Assembly: GCF_021028975.2 (NCBI RefSeq)
Contig: NC_059437.1
Location: 45,198,001 to 45,262,000, forward strand
DNA from: Sphaerodactylus townsendi
Taxonomy: Eukaryota
Direction of reading: 5' to 3'
DNA length: 64,000 nt
The translations under genes and the position numbers were made by a program. Position 1 is the first letter of the stretch; every line of letters begins with the position of its first letter. The notes beneath the pieces were generated by a model. That model was not told where the DNA came from, did no database searches, and saw nothing but the letters and a program-made list of their open reading frames with translations. Of the stretch, positions 4,342 to 58,931 are shown piece after piece.

Positions 4342-4482
4342 NNNNNNNNNNNNNNNNNNNNNNNNNNNNNNNNNNNNNNNNNNNNNNNNNNNNNNNNNNN
4401 NNNNNNNNNNNNNNNNNNNNNNNNNNNNNNNNNNNNNNNNNNNNNNNNNNNNNNNNNNNNNNNNNNNNNNNNNNNNNNNNNN
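4342..4482. other. Assembly gap (141 N)
   Basis: Run of N. Confidence 1.
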
Positions 4483-21570: not shown

Positions 21571-21715
21571 NNNNNNNNNNNNNNNNNNNNNNNNNNNNNN
21601 NNNNNNNNNNNNNNNNNNNNNNNNNNNNNNNNNNNNNNNNNNNNNNNNNNNNNNNNNNNNNNNNNNNNNNNNNNNNNNNNNNNNNNNNNNNNNNNNNNNN
21701 NNNNNNNNNNNNNNN
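21571..21715. other. Assembly gap (145 N)
   Basis: Run of N following a poly-G run. Confidence 1.
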
Positions 21716-22219
21716 GCTGAAATAAGCATCTCTGCTTTCTCCGTCTGGCAAGAAATCTATGCTTGATGAAAACTCTTCTTGACAGATCTGTGTTCTCTGG
21801 CCCACACGCTATTTTATCTATGATTTTTAACACCCTTTTTCTGTCCCAAATATATTTTGTGCACTTTCCTTCTCTTTTCTTTCTTCTCTTCCTTCCTTCC
21901 TTCCTTCCCTCCCTCCCTCCCTCCCTCCCTCCCTCCTCCCTTCCTTCCTTTCTCTCTCTCCTGGATCCAAGGAATATCGGTAGAGGCTGTGGGCGTATTG
22001 GGGGTGGGGGTGGTGAATAGATGATGAAAAATATCATAAATTGTAGGCTGCAGAATCAGACATCTTTAACTTCTGCCCTCAAGTCAGTGGGAATTTAATT
22101 TAATCTGCCCACTCGTTTGCTTTGAAGGAGAGGGGGCTTCATAGGATTGGGAAGAGGGGTGGCCCAGAAAAGGTCCGGACCACACTGTTTAAAAACAAAC
22201 ACACGAACAAAACATAAGG

Positions 22220-22372
22220 AAGTGTTGTGGGTTTTCTGGGCTGTATGGCCGTGTTCCAGTAGCATTTTCTCCTGATGCCAGTCACAGATGCAGGCAAAAC
22301 TTCAGGAGAAAATGCTACTGGAAACCCCAAAACACTCCAGTGATTCCGGCCCTGAAAGCCTTCGACAATACA
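22220..22372. mobile_element. Penelope-like inverted terminal fragment
   Basis: ttccagtagcattttctcctga / tcaggagaaaatgctactggaa inverted pair plus gattccggccctgaaagccttcgacaataca. Confidence 0.7.
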
Positions 22373-22858
22373 TAAAACATAAAGAAACTTTCCTTATAGG
22401 CTCTTCCCAAAGGGGCTGCTTCGACCTCTTTCCGGAATCCGGACCTTAACATTTGGGCCACAGAGAATCTCCCGGGCTTTCCTTTCCCCGCTGGGCTGCT
22501 GCTTCTTCTCGACTGAGTGTCAGAAGAGGGTGGCCGCCCTGGTCTGGGGGGCTGCATCTGGAGTGGGGTCCGGGAGCACTTTAGGGACCAAGAAGCGGTT
22601 CAGGGAAATGGACTCGACTCCAGCTGTCCTGCCCTGGACTCCCCTTGAGGACGGCCATGGAGAGAAATTTTGACACTCGATAGCTCATACCCTGAAAGTT
22701 TGAATGGTCTCTAGGTGCCCCTGGATTGGAATCTAACAGCAGAATTTAGCGCTCCTCCCCGCTCCAATTCTAGGCTTCCCTCGGCCCAGGGAGGTGGGGA
22801 CGCCCTCCTGCTCTCTCCACAGGTCCTTTTCGAAATCTTCAGTGCCTCAGGGTGTTGG

Positions 22859-23166
22859 GAGCAGCAGTGGTTAAGAGCAGGTGCACTCTAATCTGGACAA
22901 CCGGGTTTGATTCCACACTCTGCCACTTGGGCCATGGAGGCTTATCTGGTGAACCAGATTAGCTTGTGCACTCCGACACATGCCATTCTGGGTGACCTTG
23001 GGCTAGTCACAGTTCTTCAGAGCTCTCTCAGCCCCACGCACCTCACAGGGTGTTTGTTGTTGTTGGGGGGGGGGGAAGGAGTCTGTAAGTCCCTTTGAGT
23101 CTCCTTACAGGAGAGAAGGGGAGGGGTATACATTCAAACTCTTCTTCTTCTCTCCTTCTTCTTCTT
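22859..23166 (+). mobile_element. Squam3-like SINE bordering the distal CpG island
   Basis: tRNA-like head, body and (CTT)n tail. Confidence 0.8.
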
Positions 23167-23199
23167 CGGTCCAGGTGCCCTCAGCCTTTCTCAGGGGCT

Positions 23200-24870
23200 T
23201 AAAACCGCAGTGTGTGTATGGGGGGGGGGGGAAGTGTTTTGGAAGGAGCCACTCGCTTGCATTGCAAGGAAATGTGGCCGTCGGGAGGGGGGGTCAGCAG
23301 AAGGGGGCCGGAGAGCGGAGTGGGAGGACAAGTCAAGCAGGAGGATAAACGGGGTGGGGTGGAGAGAAGGCAGCGACTAATAAATAAATCGCCGACGGGG
23401 GGAAGGAGGCGGTGGGCGGAGGAGGCGGAGGAGGGAAGCGCTGGTGAGACGGGGCGGCCCGGACGGGGCTCGCCTCGCCCGGAGAGGTTTTCCTCCAGCT
23501 GGGCGGGAGCGGCCCGGGGAGGGGGAAGGGCCGGCCCGGGCGGAGGGCAGTCGCGGGGAAGCGTCCCGCGCCGCTGCGCCCTCCCGCCGGGGGCCCCGCC
23601 TGCCCTCCCGCCCGCCCGCCCGCCCGCCCGCCGTGGCGCGCTGAGCTGCGGGCTGGGGCCGGCCGGGCCGGGCTGTGCTCTATGGACGAGGGCAGCCCGC
23701 TGTCGCCCAAGGCCAGCGCCTTCAGGATCGCCTCTCTCATTGCAGCCGCCGGTCAGCCGGACCGGGAGCCGCAGCAGCAGCCCGGGGGGCCCTTCGCGGC
23801 GCTGGACGCCCAGCTGAGCGCCCACGGGGGTCTGCCCAAGCCCTACAGCCCCGCCGCCCTCGCCGCCGCTGCCCGCAGGAGGATGCATTTCAGCGCCGTC
23901 ACCAGGGACATGGAAGGTAAGCCAAGGAAGCGGCCGTCGGGGAGGGAGGGAGCGAGGGAGGGCCAGCCGGGGCTGCTTTCTCCACCCCCGGGGAGCCCCG
24001 ATCCCGGGCAGGGGGCTGAGGCGTCGCCCCCGCCCCCCCTTTCTCCCAGCCCGCCGCGGTTCCTTCCCGGGCCTTCCCCACCTCTCCAAACCTGCTTGGG
24101 GGAAACGCGGGGGCCACCTTTTGCTCGGCGATCCTCAGCACGCTGCAGGCGAAAGAGAGTTCCTCAACTGGAGGAGGCCGGCTGCCAGGCAGGCGACCAG
24201 GGGGTTTTCCTTCCGAGGAGCCGGGTCCGGCGGCGGAGGGGTCAGATCCCCCGGGCAAAGGCGAGCGGGCGGCCCCGAGGCCACGTCGACGGAATTTGGA
24301 GTCACTCGCCTGTCCTAGGACGGTTTCCGTAGCTTCCCAGCAAAGCGCCACTCCGTTTGGCCTCCGGGGCGCCTGGGCCAGCGGGGCCCGGAAGGCTCTC
24401 CCGAAACCGCAGCCGCTCCACGCGATCCTTGTGCCGCGGCCGGGTCGCCATCAGTCACCGAGGTGGCCCAGAGAGAGGCACGGAGGATGACAGCGCAGCA
24501 AGAACCGCGTTTGGGGAGCGGGAGGAAGCGGAGCCTTCTCCGCCGAGACAGCCGGGCGAGGCACGATCCAGCACTCAGTTAAGCCCTCCTAGGCACGCTG
24601 ACGGGGGAGTCAACCCCCTGGAAGAAAGCGAGGCTTACTTCCGAGGAAACACACCTAGTGGTGGCTGCACAGCCGGGCCGTGTGAACGCCACCGATGTGC
24701 GCAGGAGCTTGAATGCGCTCGGGCGAGATGAACGGAACTCGAGATGGTTAGTTTCAGTTTGGGTTGGGGAGCGCCACCCCGGACCCCGAATCCGCCCCGG
24801 TGCGCGTTTCCTCTCTGCGCTCCGTGCGCAAAGCCCTCCGCTCCAGGGCACCAAAGCATGGGGGGAGCGC
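23200..24870. promoter_or_regulatory. CpG island / distal TBX1 promoter around the upstream exon
   Basis: Very GC- and CpG-rich with multiple GC boxes (ccgccc arrays at 23580-23635) directly ahead of ATG 23682. Confidence 0.75.
23682..23916 (+). CDS. TBX1: TBX1 alternative upstream coding exon (MDEGSPLSPKASAFRIASLI...MHFSAVTRDME)
   Basis: ATG at 23682 is open and in frame with ATG 23883 (MHFSAVTRDME, matching the human TBX1 start MHFSTVTRDME). Ends GAAG|GTAAGC (donor 23917, phase 1), compatible with acceptor AG 27438-27439 (G+CC=Ala, then FAANSLSSL). Confidence 0.85.
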
Positions 24871-25282
24871 AAGGTTGCCTACAGTTAAGTTAGAATAAAA
24901 GGATAGCCTTGCATTATAGAATAGTTCAGAGCGAAAAATGATCGTGTGCTTGTAAGCTCCTAACCTTACTTCGGAGTTAGTTCTATTTTAGGGCGCGTTG
25001 TAAAGTGGATTTTAAAACAGTTAAGGATGCAGGACCGGATATCTGCTACATGTATATCGGAATTTCACCCGTCTCAACTTGCTTCTAACCGCATCTGGGG
25101 TTAAATCAAAGTTCTGGGGGTGAAATTGACAGGTCAGGGTATTTGAGTCACCTAAGAGTAATCATATAGAGAGGCAATTATGTATGGTATAATGTCATGA
25201 ATAGTAAAATTCTGTAGGTAACCTCTCAGGTTGAGGCGAGTGATGGAAGAGCGCATTAAATACAGTCACATTGTCATTCCCA

Positions 25283-25440
25283 GGCCCCTTCCGCACGCGC
25301 AGAATAATGCACTTTCAATCCACTTTGCCGGCAGGTCCACTTTGCAGCTGGATTTTACTGTACGGAATAGCAAGATCCACTTGCAAACAATTGTGAAAGT
25401 GGACTGAAAGTGCATTATTCTGCATGTGCGGAAGGGGTCC
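25283..25440. mobile_element. MITE family A
   Basis: TIR match. Confidence 0.82.
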
Positions 25441-25608
25441 TAGGTTTTGGACAGACAAGGAGGCCTCTTCCCAGATGCGAGAACGCCAAGGGAATAAGAG
25501 GCAAAGTAGAATAAGACCAAATCGGCTGGATGTCTTTCGGAGGGAATCCCATTCACTTCTACTGGTCTCCAAGAAGAGACCTCGAAGCTGCGCAGGTTGC
25601 CAAACTTA

Positions 25609-25726
25609 GGCAGATTCCTCATGGGCAAAAAACGGCAGTGTGAAAACGGTGTAAACTCTTTTACATCATTTTAAACCCTTTTACACTGTTTTCACACTGC
25701 TGTTTTTGGCCCATGAGGAATCAGCC
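25609..25726. mobile_element. MITE family B
   Basis: TIR match to the 18762 copy. Confidence 0.8.
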
Positions 25727-27378
25727 TATTAGAGAAGGCTCCCTGCTCGGCTGCCCACGTTTGCAAGCAACTCAGGGCACTGTTCAGAGGGTACATTTTT
25801 AAAATAACAGGCAGCGTTCATTTCCATTGCCTTTTTTTTTTTGGCTTTGTTTTAATTCGGGGGAAAGGTAGGAAAGACCGGGCGCGTATTTCTAGCGCCC
25901 CTGCCCCGTGGAATCCACCAGATTCCTCCCCAGAGAAGCGTGCCATAGCGATAGAAGCTTAAGGGGTTTCATTGCTCAGAGCTCCGCAGCAGAAACACAC
26001 GCAACCCGTTGGGATCCCGACGGATCTCGGGAAAGAGGATCGCGCCCAGCCCAACCGGTCCGTGTCCAAATTCGAAGAAGGCCGGCCCGGGAGTCGTTTG
26101 CTCCAGCCAGGCTGACAAAGGGAAGCTCTTCGCGTTCCTCCCTGGCCAGTGGATCTGGGCAAAGGGAACTCGCGCAGGATCCGGCCTTTCGGGGAAAACG
26201 GACTACCCCCCCACCCCCGCGTGCTGAGGATCGCCGGCAAAGATCGCCCCGGACCCGGACTGTCCGCAGCGCCAAGCCCGGCGGATGGCTCCCCCAGCGC
26301 CAGTCGTTTCGGGTCTGCTGGGTCCTCCGGCGCTCGCAAGGTCCGCCGAGCAACTGGGAAGTGGGCCCGATTCAAGGGGCCGGGAGTGCGGCACCTTTCC
26401 AGTGCCCGCCGGACTCCTCCGAAGAAGGGTCGCGTCTCCCGGGAGCGGCTTAAGAGCGCTGGGGATCGGAGCTCTCCCGGGCGGGATCCGGTACAGTTGG
26501 ATCCCGGATCCGGACAGAGGAGAAAGCGGAGGTGGGGGAAGAGGGGGAGAGCGCGACAGAGGCGCCCGGCCGAGCTGTGCCTCTTCCTTCTCGGAGGGGG
26601 GGGGAGGGGGCGAGTGCGAGTCCAGGAAAGGCCTGGGCTGGACACGGGGGCGGGGGGAGGACCTCCCGCCAATCATTCCTGCTCGGCTTCTTCCGCGGGG
26701 CCAGCCGAGGCCGGCGTGCTCGACTTCCCTGTTGCCGGAGCGCCGCGGAGGGAAGCGGCGGGCGGGCGGCCCAAAGGAGCCGCGCCAGGAGGCAGCAGCC
26801 CGGCCCGCGCCCCTCACGGCTTCCCGACGGGGAGGGCGGGGCCAGAAAGCGCCCCCGCTGGGCCGGGCCTGCCGCGCGCGCGCGCTCCAGAAGGAGGAGG
26901 CTGACAGACAGACAGACAGACAGGCGGGGGAGCCGGAGAGGCGAGGCTGGCGCTGGAGCGCGCGCGGAGAGGAAGGCGAGGCTGAGGAGGGCGCGCCGCC
27001 TGAGAGGGCTCCAGGCGCCTGCAGCGGGCGGGGGGGAGCGAGCGGAGCTAGGATCCCGCCTGAGCGCCAAAGACCCCCCGCGCGCCCCCTCCTCCCCGTC
27101 TGGGCGCGCGCCCGCTGCTTGGGCCGGGCTTGCAGGAGGGAGGGCAGCGCCCGGGGTTGCGGCGCAGGCGCGCTCCCCGCGGAGAGCCCCCTCCCTCCCT
27201 CCTTCCCCGCCCGCCCGCCCGCCTGCCTGCCCGCCTGGCTGCCTGTGGGCGCCCTTGTGGTGCGCGAGGAGGCGCGGGGGGCTATAAGTGTCTGCGGGCC
27301 GGCGGGGTTCGGGCGCAGAGCTGCCGGCGGGCGGGCGGGCGCCGGGGCGGGCAGGGCAGGGCAGGGCAGGAGCCGGGC

Positions 27379-27884
27379 ATGATTTCGGCCATCTCGAGCC
27401 CGTGGCTGACGCAGCTCTCGCACTTCTGCGACGTCGCAGCCTTCGCGGCCAACAGCCTGAGCAGCCTCAACGCCTCGGCCGCCTACCCGCACCTGGCGCC
27501 CCCCTCGCCCGCCCAGCCCGCCGCCGCCGCCGCCTACGGCCACCATGAGCCCCCCCAGCCGCAGCCCCACTACGAGCCCTGCGCCGCCCAGCAGCAGCAG
27601 CACCAGCAGGCGCACCAGCAGCAGCAGCAGCAGCAGCAGCCTCCTTCGCAGCAGCAGCAGCAGCACGGCTACCCCTTCGCCGGCTCCGGCTCCAACCCTC
27701 CTCCGGCGCCCGGCTCCGAGACCCCCGAAGGGGCGGGGGGCGGCAGCTCGGCGCCTTCTTCGGCCAAGGCGGCGGTGAAGAAGAACGCCAAGGTGGCCAA
27801 CGTGAGCGTGCAGCTGGAGATGAAGGCGCTCTGGGACGAGTTCAACCAGCTGGGCACCGAGATGATCGTCACCAAGGCCGGCAG
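27379..27884 (+). CDS. TBX1: TBX1 main first coding exon ([19 protein letters not shown]...[28 protein letters not shown]); alternative internal entry at 27440
   Basis: TBX1-type N-terminus followed by the start of the T-box; donor AG|GTCAGT at 27885, phase 2. Confidence 0.97.
27589..27666 (+). repeat. Interrupted CAG repeat encoding a polyQ/H tract in TBX1
   Basis: [26 protein letters not shown]; every Gln codon is CAG. Confidence 0.95.
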
Positions 27885-37230: not shown

Positions 37231-37434
<204 letters not shown>

Positions 37435-43954: not shown

Positions 43955-44194
<240 letters not shown>

Positions 44195-46052: not shown

Positions 46053-46547
<495 letters not shown>

Positions 46548-56206: not shown

Positions 56207-56317
<111 letters not shown>

Positions 56318-57426: not shown

Positions 57427-58830
57427 TTGGTTTCTTGATGTTTCAGAACAACCAGGAATGAGGTTTTGGACAAAGCTTTCAGTCCATGAGAGATGGGGTG
57501 CTGGATTCCTTGTTTTCCTCTTCTATTACTCTGTTTGCACATATCTCTCAGACCATCTCCTCCCTTTCCAGTTCACACTGGCTCTGTTTCAGTTAGGAAA
57601 AAGGACCTTGTGAATCAAGCAAAATCATGGGAATGTGTTGATTTGCTTGGTTGATCTGGAGTGCAAAATGTCACATGTGTTCAGTCCAGGTTTTAGAGTT
57701 TGGTTTCAAAGAACTGGGGCTGAGAGGATGCACAGGCCTTGTATTGTCCTTCCAGGAGGAGACCAGCTCAGGGAGAAATCTGCTGCCTTCATGACTTGTT
57801 TTTGGAGTTCCTGGAGAGATATGTATAGCCACTGGTGGAAACAGGATACTTCTATGTTCTTTACGCCACAAACTATGTTGTTGGAAAAGTAGTTAATTGG
57901 GAAAGTGAGTTATTTTCAGTGTGGGAAAACAACAGAGTGTTCTTGCTGCCGGGAATCCCTGTTCCATGAATCCCATTAGCAGTTTCCAATGAATGTCTAT
58001 CCAAAGAACAACCACACACAGAATGCAGGGATAAGAAATGAATTGTCAGAACAGCGTGAGACTTAAGATCATATATCAAGGCTTGAAGTAGTCAGTACTG
58101 GGATGAAGTCACATTTCTCAAGCTTACAGAGAGATTAGCTTCAGCCTACCATAGAGTTTCCAGCAGTCCCCAGGGATGTTTCCCCTGGAAGTGATGTCAT
58201 GCCATTGGCCAAACAGCCCTGCTTCCAGGCTCCTCGAGCTCAGTGTTTTCCTTTCTTAAGCCTTCCGTAGTCTGTAAGGATGTATACATATGCCATCTTT
58301 CACGTCTTTATATGTTGCCATTGCACCTATCTTTCATTGCTGGAGTTCCTGGTTTGTTTTTTTGTACACTATTTTTATGCCATTTTACACCATTTTTATT
58401 CTACTGGTGTGCACGAAACCAGCTGTACAATACCAGCCAGTTGTACAACATCAGCCGTACTTTTTGATGGCAATAACAATTCTGTCCAATTTTATTAGTA
58501 TGGTTGGTTTGGGGGAAAATATGCCTACAGTTTCATTCCAGTGCCAGAACTTGGGGTTTTATGATAACATTTATATCCATCTTTCCTCATGGCTCAAGGC
58601 TGCATAACAGTATCAGTTAAAAACATTTCCAGTTAAAATCAAAAATAAAATGGGAAATCCCATGTCTCCCCCGACCCTTAAAAGATGCCTGCCATTCAAA
58701 CCCTCTCAAAAACTCCAGTAGACAGGTTTGCCCTAGTCATATTCAGTGAGAGTATATTCTCAAACTTTAGCAATTACCCTAAGTTAGTTCTCTTTAATTT
58801 ATTGTTACTGTTCTGTTCCCCTTGTGTCAG

Positions 58831-58931
58831 GCCCAGAAATCACCGACCTGGGGCTCTGCCTCTCATGAGTGCTTTCGCTAGGTCCAGAAATCCGGTATCT
58901 TCCCCAGTGCATCAGAATGGAAACGAGAAAG
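58831..58931 (+). CDS. TBX1: TBX1 post-T-box exon ([33 protein letters not shown]); gene continues beyond the window
   Basis: Acceptor cttgtgtcag, 101 nt, donor GTGAGT; peptide is characteristic of TBX1. No terminal exon recognised in 58932-64000. Confidence 0.96.

Follow-up and report, generated by a model that had tools for sequence, protein, structure and literature searches.

An eh1-like N-terminal motif encoded upstream of the classical start of TBX1 in the gecko Sphaerodactylus townsendi and conserved among jawed vertebrates

We analyzed a stretch of 64,000 nucleotides from the gecko Sphaerodactylus townsendi (NCBI RefSeq assembly GCF_021028975.2, contig NC_059437.1, positions 45,198,001 to 45,262,000 of the forward strand; hereafter the window, with positions counted from its first base), which carries a gene that we identify as TBX1, the main dosage-sensitive gene of 22q11.2 deletion syndrome. 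We consider it likely that a gecko TBX1 exon codes from an ATG (ATG1) lying upstream of the classical MHFS start (ATG2), that the ancestral N-terminus so produced recruits TLE co-repressors through an eh1 motif, and that forms without the motif arise from the same locus by three routes. As comparison among species shows, the N-terminus of TBX1 in ancestral jawed vertebrates comprised an eh1-containing block of 20–22 residues, a fast-evolving linker of variable length, and then MHFS.VTRDME. On our reading, the core residues F14, I16, L19, and I20 would bind the WD40 domain of the Groucho/TLE co-repressors, and long TBX1 would act as a direct TLE-dependent repressor, as do TBX20, TBX15, TBX18, and TBX22. 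Forms lacking the motif would be made from an alternative first exon that starts at MISA (ATG 27380), from an upstream exon spliced to an acceptor just after the motif, as in frog gene models, or by leaky scanning past ATG1 to ATG2.

The N-terminal extension and its conservation

ATG1 (23682–23684) is in frame with ATG2 (23883), 201 nt or 67 codons downstream, and the extension between them (23682..23882, forward strand) is supported by sequence, translation, and orthologues in 27 species. The stretch 23682–23916 begins ATG GAC GAG and reads without a stop for 78 residues on the forward strand, the first being MDEGSPLSPKASAFRIASLI and the last RRRMHFSAVTRDME. Its 3′ part (23883..23916, forward strand) holds the classical MHFSAVTRDME start, with A at −3 of ATG2, and the exon ends GAAG/gtaagc after 23916, a phase-1 donor with its gt at 23917–23918. 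The acceptor cgcag/CC at 27439/27440 completes an Ala codon, and the frame runs on into the T-box. A preliminary description of this DNA had proposed an in-frame ATG 201 nt ahead of the MHFS start, adding 67 amino acids on an exon that joins the T-box exons in frame; sequence and translation agree with the first point, and the fit of the phase-1 donor to the acceptor bears out the second. The frame of ATG1 stays open upstream as far as 23448, in surrounding GC-rich DNA where open frames are common, and the exon-1 region is a GC-rich CpG-island promoter.

Exons of the window were searched individually, and full-length queries were taken from database proteins. In a set of 1.84 billion representative proteins, the best match was UniRef A0ACB8FYR7, an 'uncharacterized protein' of S. 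townsendi, at 100% over the 78-residue exon. This entry uses the 23916-to-27440 junction and then continues into the next intron, and is a truncated prediction; in the poly-Q/H tract (CAG/CAC, window 27590–27660) two residues of the window differ from it (QQ vs AH).

Protein word-index searches recovered long-form TBX1 in five cartilaginous fishes (Stegostoma, Hemiscyllium, Heterodontus, Pristiophorus, and Narcine), in ray-finned fishes (the non-teleosts sturgeon and gar, and among teleosts arowana and many others) and the coelacanth, in frogs (Ascaphus, Bombina, Rana, Lithobates, Hyperolius, Engystomops, and others), in three turtles, the alligator, and many birds, including Gallus gallus isoform X3, and in five marsupials (Trichosurus, Sarcophilus, Notamacropus, Petaurus, and Monodelphis). 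In an alignment of 27 species, residues 1 to 20–22 are at least 90% conserved, with the consensus MD..PLSPKANAFSIASLI, and are followed by a linker of variable sequence and length and then by MH.S.VTR.ME, giving an exon open reading frame of 55–78 residues.

The coding character of the extension was assessed from six DNAs, namely the window, two sauropsid-type Logan contigs with the non-mammalian MHFSAV form (L001 and L002), a duck-like cDNA (L003), the frog Ascaphus, and a teleost. Within the conserved block (codons 1–22, MDEGSPLSPKASAFRIASLIAA; 23682..23747, forward strand), variable sites at codon positions 1, 2, and 3 number 3, 3, and 15, so that 15 of the 21 are third-position sites. The pairwise proportion of nonsynonymous differences (pN) is 0.025–0.11, against a synonymous proportion (pS) of 0.09–0.71, or a pN/pS of ∼0.1. 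ATG1 is invariant, and the spacing from ATG1 to ATG2 (201, 177, 132, 159, 147, and 150 nt) is in every case divisible by three, while the 66 nt upstream of ATG1 are unconserved, with an identity of 24–50%, like random GC-rich DNA. Retrieval by protein similarity favors intact frames in the compared sequences, and this bias should be small because each sequence is its species' single orthologous locus. Together, the third-position bias, the low pN/pS, the frame-keeping linker indels, and the unconserved upstream sequence argue that the extension is, by its substitution signature, a translated and selected peptide. Comparison across vertebrates, of the kind proposed in the preliminary description, finds ATG1 and the motif kept from sharks to marsupials. 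A chance open reading frame in GC-rich DNA had also been considered, and was rejected on the conservation of the ATG, the first 20–22 codons, and the frame across jawed vertebrates; a purely splice or regulatory element was rejected on the codon-position statistics.

Direct transcript evidence for the long form comes from L003, a Logan contig of 2283 nt that represents a fully spliced, duck-like TBX1 mRNA with an N-terminus identical to that of Anas proteins; it contains a 303-nt leader, ATG1, and the entire 569-codon reading frame from ATG1. Its leader also holds an upstream open reading frame of three codons (MAR and a stop, L003 209–217). The long form had been called hidden, which it is not, as UniRef A0ACB8FYR7 and NCBI predicted isoforms already hold the extension. 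The accompanying caution that predicted database isoforms might include it was well placed: dozens of NCBI predicted 'isoform X' entries do, from chicken, alligator, turtles, frogs, fishes, sharks, and marsupials, and in some species (Bombina, Heterodontus, Trichosurus, and Monodelphis) the long form is the only TBX1 model. Long NCBI models such as Gallus gallus X3, Alligator X3 (XP_059569448.1), Monodelphis (XP_056677381.1), and Trichosurus (XP_036597291.1) have the exon structure and N-terminus of the window reading frame, but these automatic predictions assign no function to the motif, and the gecko entry is the truncated one described above.

The eh1-like motif and repressors of the Tbx1 subfamily

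Residues 14–20 of the extension read FRIASLI in the gecko and FSIASLI in the 27-species consensus, and both match the eh1 pattern F-x-I-x-x-[IL]-[IL]. The core (F14-R-I-A-S-L-I20; 23721..23741, forward strand), as given by translation and the 27-species alignment, lies ∼190 residues N-terminal to the T-box, outside the DNA-binding domain. Judged by this motif match, the long form of TBX1 would recruit TLE. The likeness in placement to TBX15, TBX18, TBX20, and TBX22 noted in the preliminary description is confirmed, as the motif is N-terminal and its residues 14–20 compare with the Phe-Ser pair at 18–19 of TBX20.

In TBX20, eh1 residues Phe18/Ser19 are required for TLE binding and heart development, and mice in which they are mutated die as embryos (PMC10629681). 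TBX20, like the long form of TBX1, belongs to the Tbx1 subfamily and has its motif, with the core F-S-I-x-x-L, N-terminal to the T-box and inside the first 25 residues. The TBX20 motif is constitutive, whereas that of TBX1, for which we infer TLE binding, lies upstream of an ATG in better context and can be left out when another 5′ end is used. Groucho-binding eh1 motifs at the N-terminus are also known in TBX15/18 and in C. elegans MLS-1 (PMC3154951; PMC6071992), and the Copley survey reported eh1 in TBX18, TBX20, and TBX22 (PMC1310626). For TBX15, TBX18, TBX22, and MLS-1, all of the Tbx1 subfamily and with N-terminal eh1, direct binding of Groucho/TLE (UNC-37) and motif-dependent repression are described (PMC3154951; PMC6071992; PMC1310626), but the papers on these proteins set TBX1 outside that eh1 group. 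The long form of TBX1 would join the known eh1-bearing proteins of the subfamily, with TLE binding predicted from its sequence.

Miller and Okkema (2011) treat the Tbx1-Groucho interaction as only indirect, via Ripply (PMC3154951), and a 2026 preprint tested TBX3, 15, 18, 20, and 22 as eh1 factors, TBX1 not being among them (PMC13308096). Ripply3 likewise yields a repressor complex of TBX1 with Groucho/TLE (PMC3154951; PMC6176997), but that recruitment is indirect, through the WRPW motif of the adaptor, and confined to sites expressing Ripply3, whereas eh1 would make recruitment intrinsic to long TBX1. Searchable papers treat TBX1 as a subfamily member without an eh1/Groucho-binding motif, in statements that concern human and mouse TBX1. 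In the full-text literature searched, whose coverage excludes most subscription journals, no paper was found that describes TBX1 as having an N-terminal extension or as carrying eh1, and an eh1-bearing TBX1 N-terminus appears to be unreported in searchable papers. As a lead, the flank of the TBX20 motif (LS.RANAFSIAAL, or LS.[RK]ANAFSIA.L as a pattern) would match LSPKANAFSIASL of TBX1 almost residue for residue, which would argue for common descent and not convergence; extended flanks are also conserved around other T-box eh1 motifs.

Forms of TBX1 without the motif

The eh1 motif looks optional at the TBX1 locus. The suggestion in the preliminary description that one locus yields both a long TBX1 with an eh1-like N-terminus and eh1-less forms is supported by the conserved coding sequence, the pattern match, and the alternative starts. 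Its placement of the motif on a separate optional exon did not stand, since the motif is the 5′ part of the exon bearing the MHFS start; the motif is made optional by the alternative MISA first exon, by an internal acceptor used in frog gene models, and possibly by leaky scanning. The MISA route is plain from the window itself, in which the alternative first exon with this start occupies 27380..27439 (forward strand). A TATA-like ctataag at 27281–27287, ∼100 nt upstream of the MISA ATG, suggests that a separate promoter within intron 1 serves this form.

The internal-acceptor and leaky-scanning routes are ones that we infer for the gecko. An acceptor-like site (gcctctctcattgcag; 23730..23745, forward strand) lies within the coding sequence, with its AG at 23744–23745, so that an exon would begin at 23746. 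S-L-I-A-A is encoded by tctctcattgcag/cc, which makes a good polypyrimidine-AG site directly 3′ of the eh1 core; all five tetrapod DNAs have this AG, and the teleost does not. In frog models a different first exon (MFSHWELT-) is joined exactly at the homologous point, and the sequence is shared from just after the motif onward (Engystomops P0096 and P0097 vs P0101, Pseudophryne P0104, and Phyllobates P0107), and splicing of this type would drop the motif yet keep the linker.

As for scanning, in 6/6 DNAs ATG1 has a pyrimidine at −3 (T in the gecko) and G at +4, and in 6/6 ATG2 has A at −3. The interval between them contains no ATG in the gecko, L001, and L002, and one out-of-frame ATG, opening a 7-codon mini-ORF, in the duck, frog, and teleost. 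That reading frame, MLSVSPL, starts in the KAN-A codons (ATG1+34) and is common to these three (L003, L004, and L005); the gecko lacks its ATG because AGC replaces AAT.

In further models from birds, frogs, and fishes, exon 1 is spliced to ...AISSPWL, which adds 17 residues by way of an acceptor where the MISA segment begins, and the duck mRNA (L003 493–500) implies TCAG/CT at this junction. This variant seems unavailable in the gecko, because window positions 27386–27391 read TCG GCC and offer no AG.

The remainder of the gene follows downstream on the forward strand. The common exon at 27440..27884 encodes an N-terminal region with poly-Q and the start of the T-box, and is followed by T-box exons ending ...KRYR (37332..37433), ...DDNGH (43990..44161), and ...YQNHR (46098..46253), each found by Pfam and tblastn searches. 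On these four successive exons the T-box profile PF00907 matches at positions 1–25, 26–60, 55–116, and 115–167. Further TBX1 exons, with approximate bounds from tblastn, lie at 56240..56317 and 58814..58930. A turtle TBX1 protein places seven exons, in order, over 23682–58930, and the T-box exons are 84–95% identical to it. The TBX1-specific MHFS.VTRDME N-terminus and the MISA start are both encoded, and both occur in proteins named TBX1 from many species. The T-box matches and the ordered turtle TBX1 exons identify the gene, by homology, as TBX1.

Reads from three RNA-seq runs bearing the species label and one genomic DNA run were mapped on 21800–27760. Interspersed repeats at 22198–22396, 22795–23192, and 25183–25779, upstream of TBX1 and in intron 1, attract enormous DNA and RNA read depth, and their element family (open reading frame fragments ...HMQNNALSIHFHNCLQVDFA...) is found at many places in the window. 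Two runs of N occur at 4342–4482 (141 bases) and 21571–21715 (145 bases), the second ∼2 kb upstream of ATG1.

Alternative explanations and implications

A number of observations weigh against a TLE-recruiting long form in the gecko. L003 is the sole direct transcript, other orthologue evidence being mostly gene predictions, and read depth over gecko exon 1 was ∼0 in the three RNA-seq runs. The rest of the mapped 6 kb of TBX1 was also almost blank, however, and these runs are uninformative rather than negative for that reason. Their sole RNA signal (27372–27570) looks like low-complexity cross-matching, because it contains GCC-repeat indels and stops short of the adjoining bin; differences in GCC-repeat length are also seen at 27517 in RNA reads of a related organism. 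Because the context of ATG1 is weak, the long form may be a minor product, and the affinity of the gecko motif could be lower on account of N12S, S15R, and the longest linker. Pfam offers no family for the 78-residue exon, and no Pfam model of eh1, a short pattern, exists. A search of the ESM Atlas with residues 1–30 of the turtle protein gave no usable match.

We give little credence to the idea that the long form is decaying or minor in the gecko lineage, with the MISA and MHFS starts doing the main work. The gecko block is indeed the most divergent among the sampled sauropsids, with S15R in the core, N12S in the flank, and an extension of 67 residues, ATG1 has T at −3, and the three runs lend no RNA support. 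But neither the frame, nor ATG1, nor any of the four hydrophobic core positions (F14, I16, L19, and I20) is disrupted, and the electric ray Narcine independently carries the F-R-I variant found in the gecko. Position 2 of eh1 varies, being F in the EN2 reference peptide ...FFIDNIL... (PMC13308096), and RNA runs that are nearly blank over the rest of the TBX1 stretch say nothing about exon 1. Far harder to credit is conservation of the block as untranslated DNA or RNA, whether as a promoter-proximal element, a structure in the 5′ untranslated region, or the splice acceptor tctctcattgcag. The acceptor-like site does overlap codons 17–22 and is used in frog models, and the region is a CpG-island promoter; yet third positions dominate the variable sites, pN/pS is ∼0.1 at a pS of up to 0.7, every linker indel keeps the frame, ATG1 is invariant next to unconserved upstream sequence, and the teleost retains the peptide without the acceptor AG.

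The extension might instead be translated and conserved with a role for its block other than TLE recruitment for repression, for example as a contact for another partner, a degron or stability signal, or a site of localization or modification. MD..PLSPKANA is as invariant as FSIASLI in the 27-species alignment, SPLSPK resembles a proline-directed kinase site, and degradation through SCF-FBXL14 has recently been reported for eh1 factors bound to TLE, so that turnover could be what the motif mainly controls (PMC13308096). We nevertheless regard such a role as unlikely, as the core matches the eh1 pattern exactly and occupies the same N-terminal position as the proven TBX20 motif (F18/S19). An N-terminus that recruits TLE is the reading we prefer.

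No eutherian protein with the extension was found in any protein-database search, human sequence not having been examined, whereas marsupials scored well there (possum, 65 bits), which suggests loss, decay, or non-annotation of the extension in placentals, and this would explain why the motif has not been found in human and mouse work. A similar in-frame extension ahead of the human MHFS start, suggested in the preliminary description, is left unsupported by these protein databases, and nothing was found to support the relevance to 22q11 variant interpretation that had been attached to it.

It is conceivable, and we put it forward only tentatively, that the TBX1 of ancestral jawed vertebrates was switchable, a direct TLE-dependent repressor by virtue of its eh1 motif, with the motif toggled by the choice of 5′ end (the ATG1 exon, the internal acceptor, or the MISA promoter) together with leaky scanning, and that placentals, in which the biochemistry of TBX1 was worked out, have lost or silenced this N-terminus and rely on adaptors such as Ripply3. 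If so, constructs based on the MHFS or MISA starts, and translation-blocking reagents used in fish, frog, and chick, would have tested an eh1-less TBX1. In work on non-mammalian models, the finding matters in practice when cDNAs and targets for morpholinos or CRISPR are chosen. The mechanism by which TBX1 represses targets such as Mef2c is a standing question (Pane et al.), and a conserved eh1 motif in nearly every non-placental vertebrate examined offers a candidate route to direct TLE recruitment that can be tested in zebrafish, Xenopus, chick, and marsupials. An eh1 motif in TBX1 would complete the picture of a motif common to the Tbx1 subfamily, with a possible lineage-specific loss in placentals.

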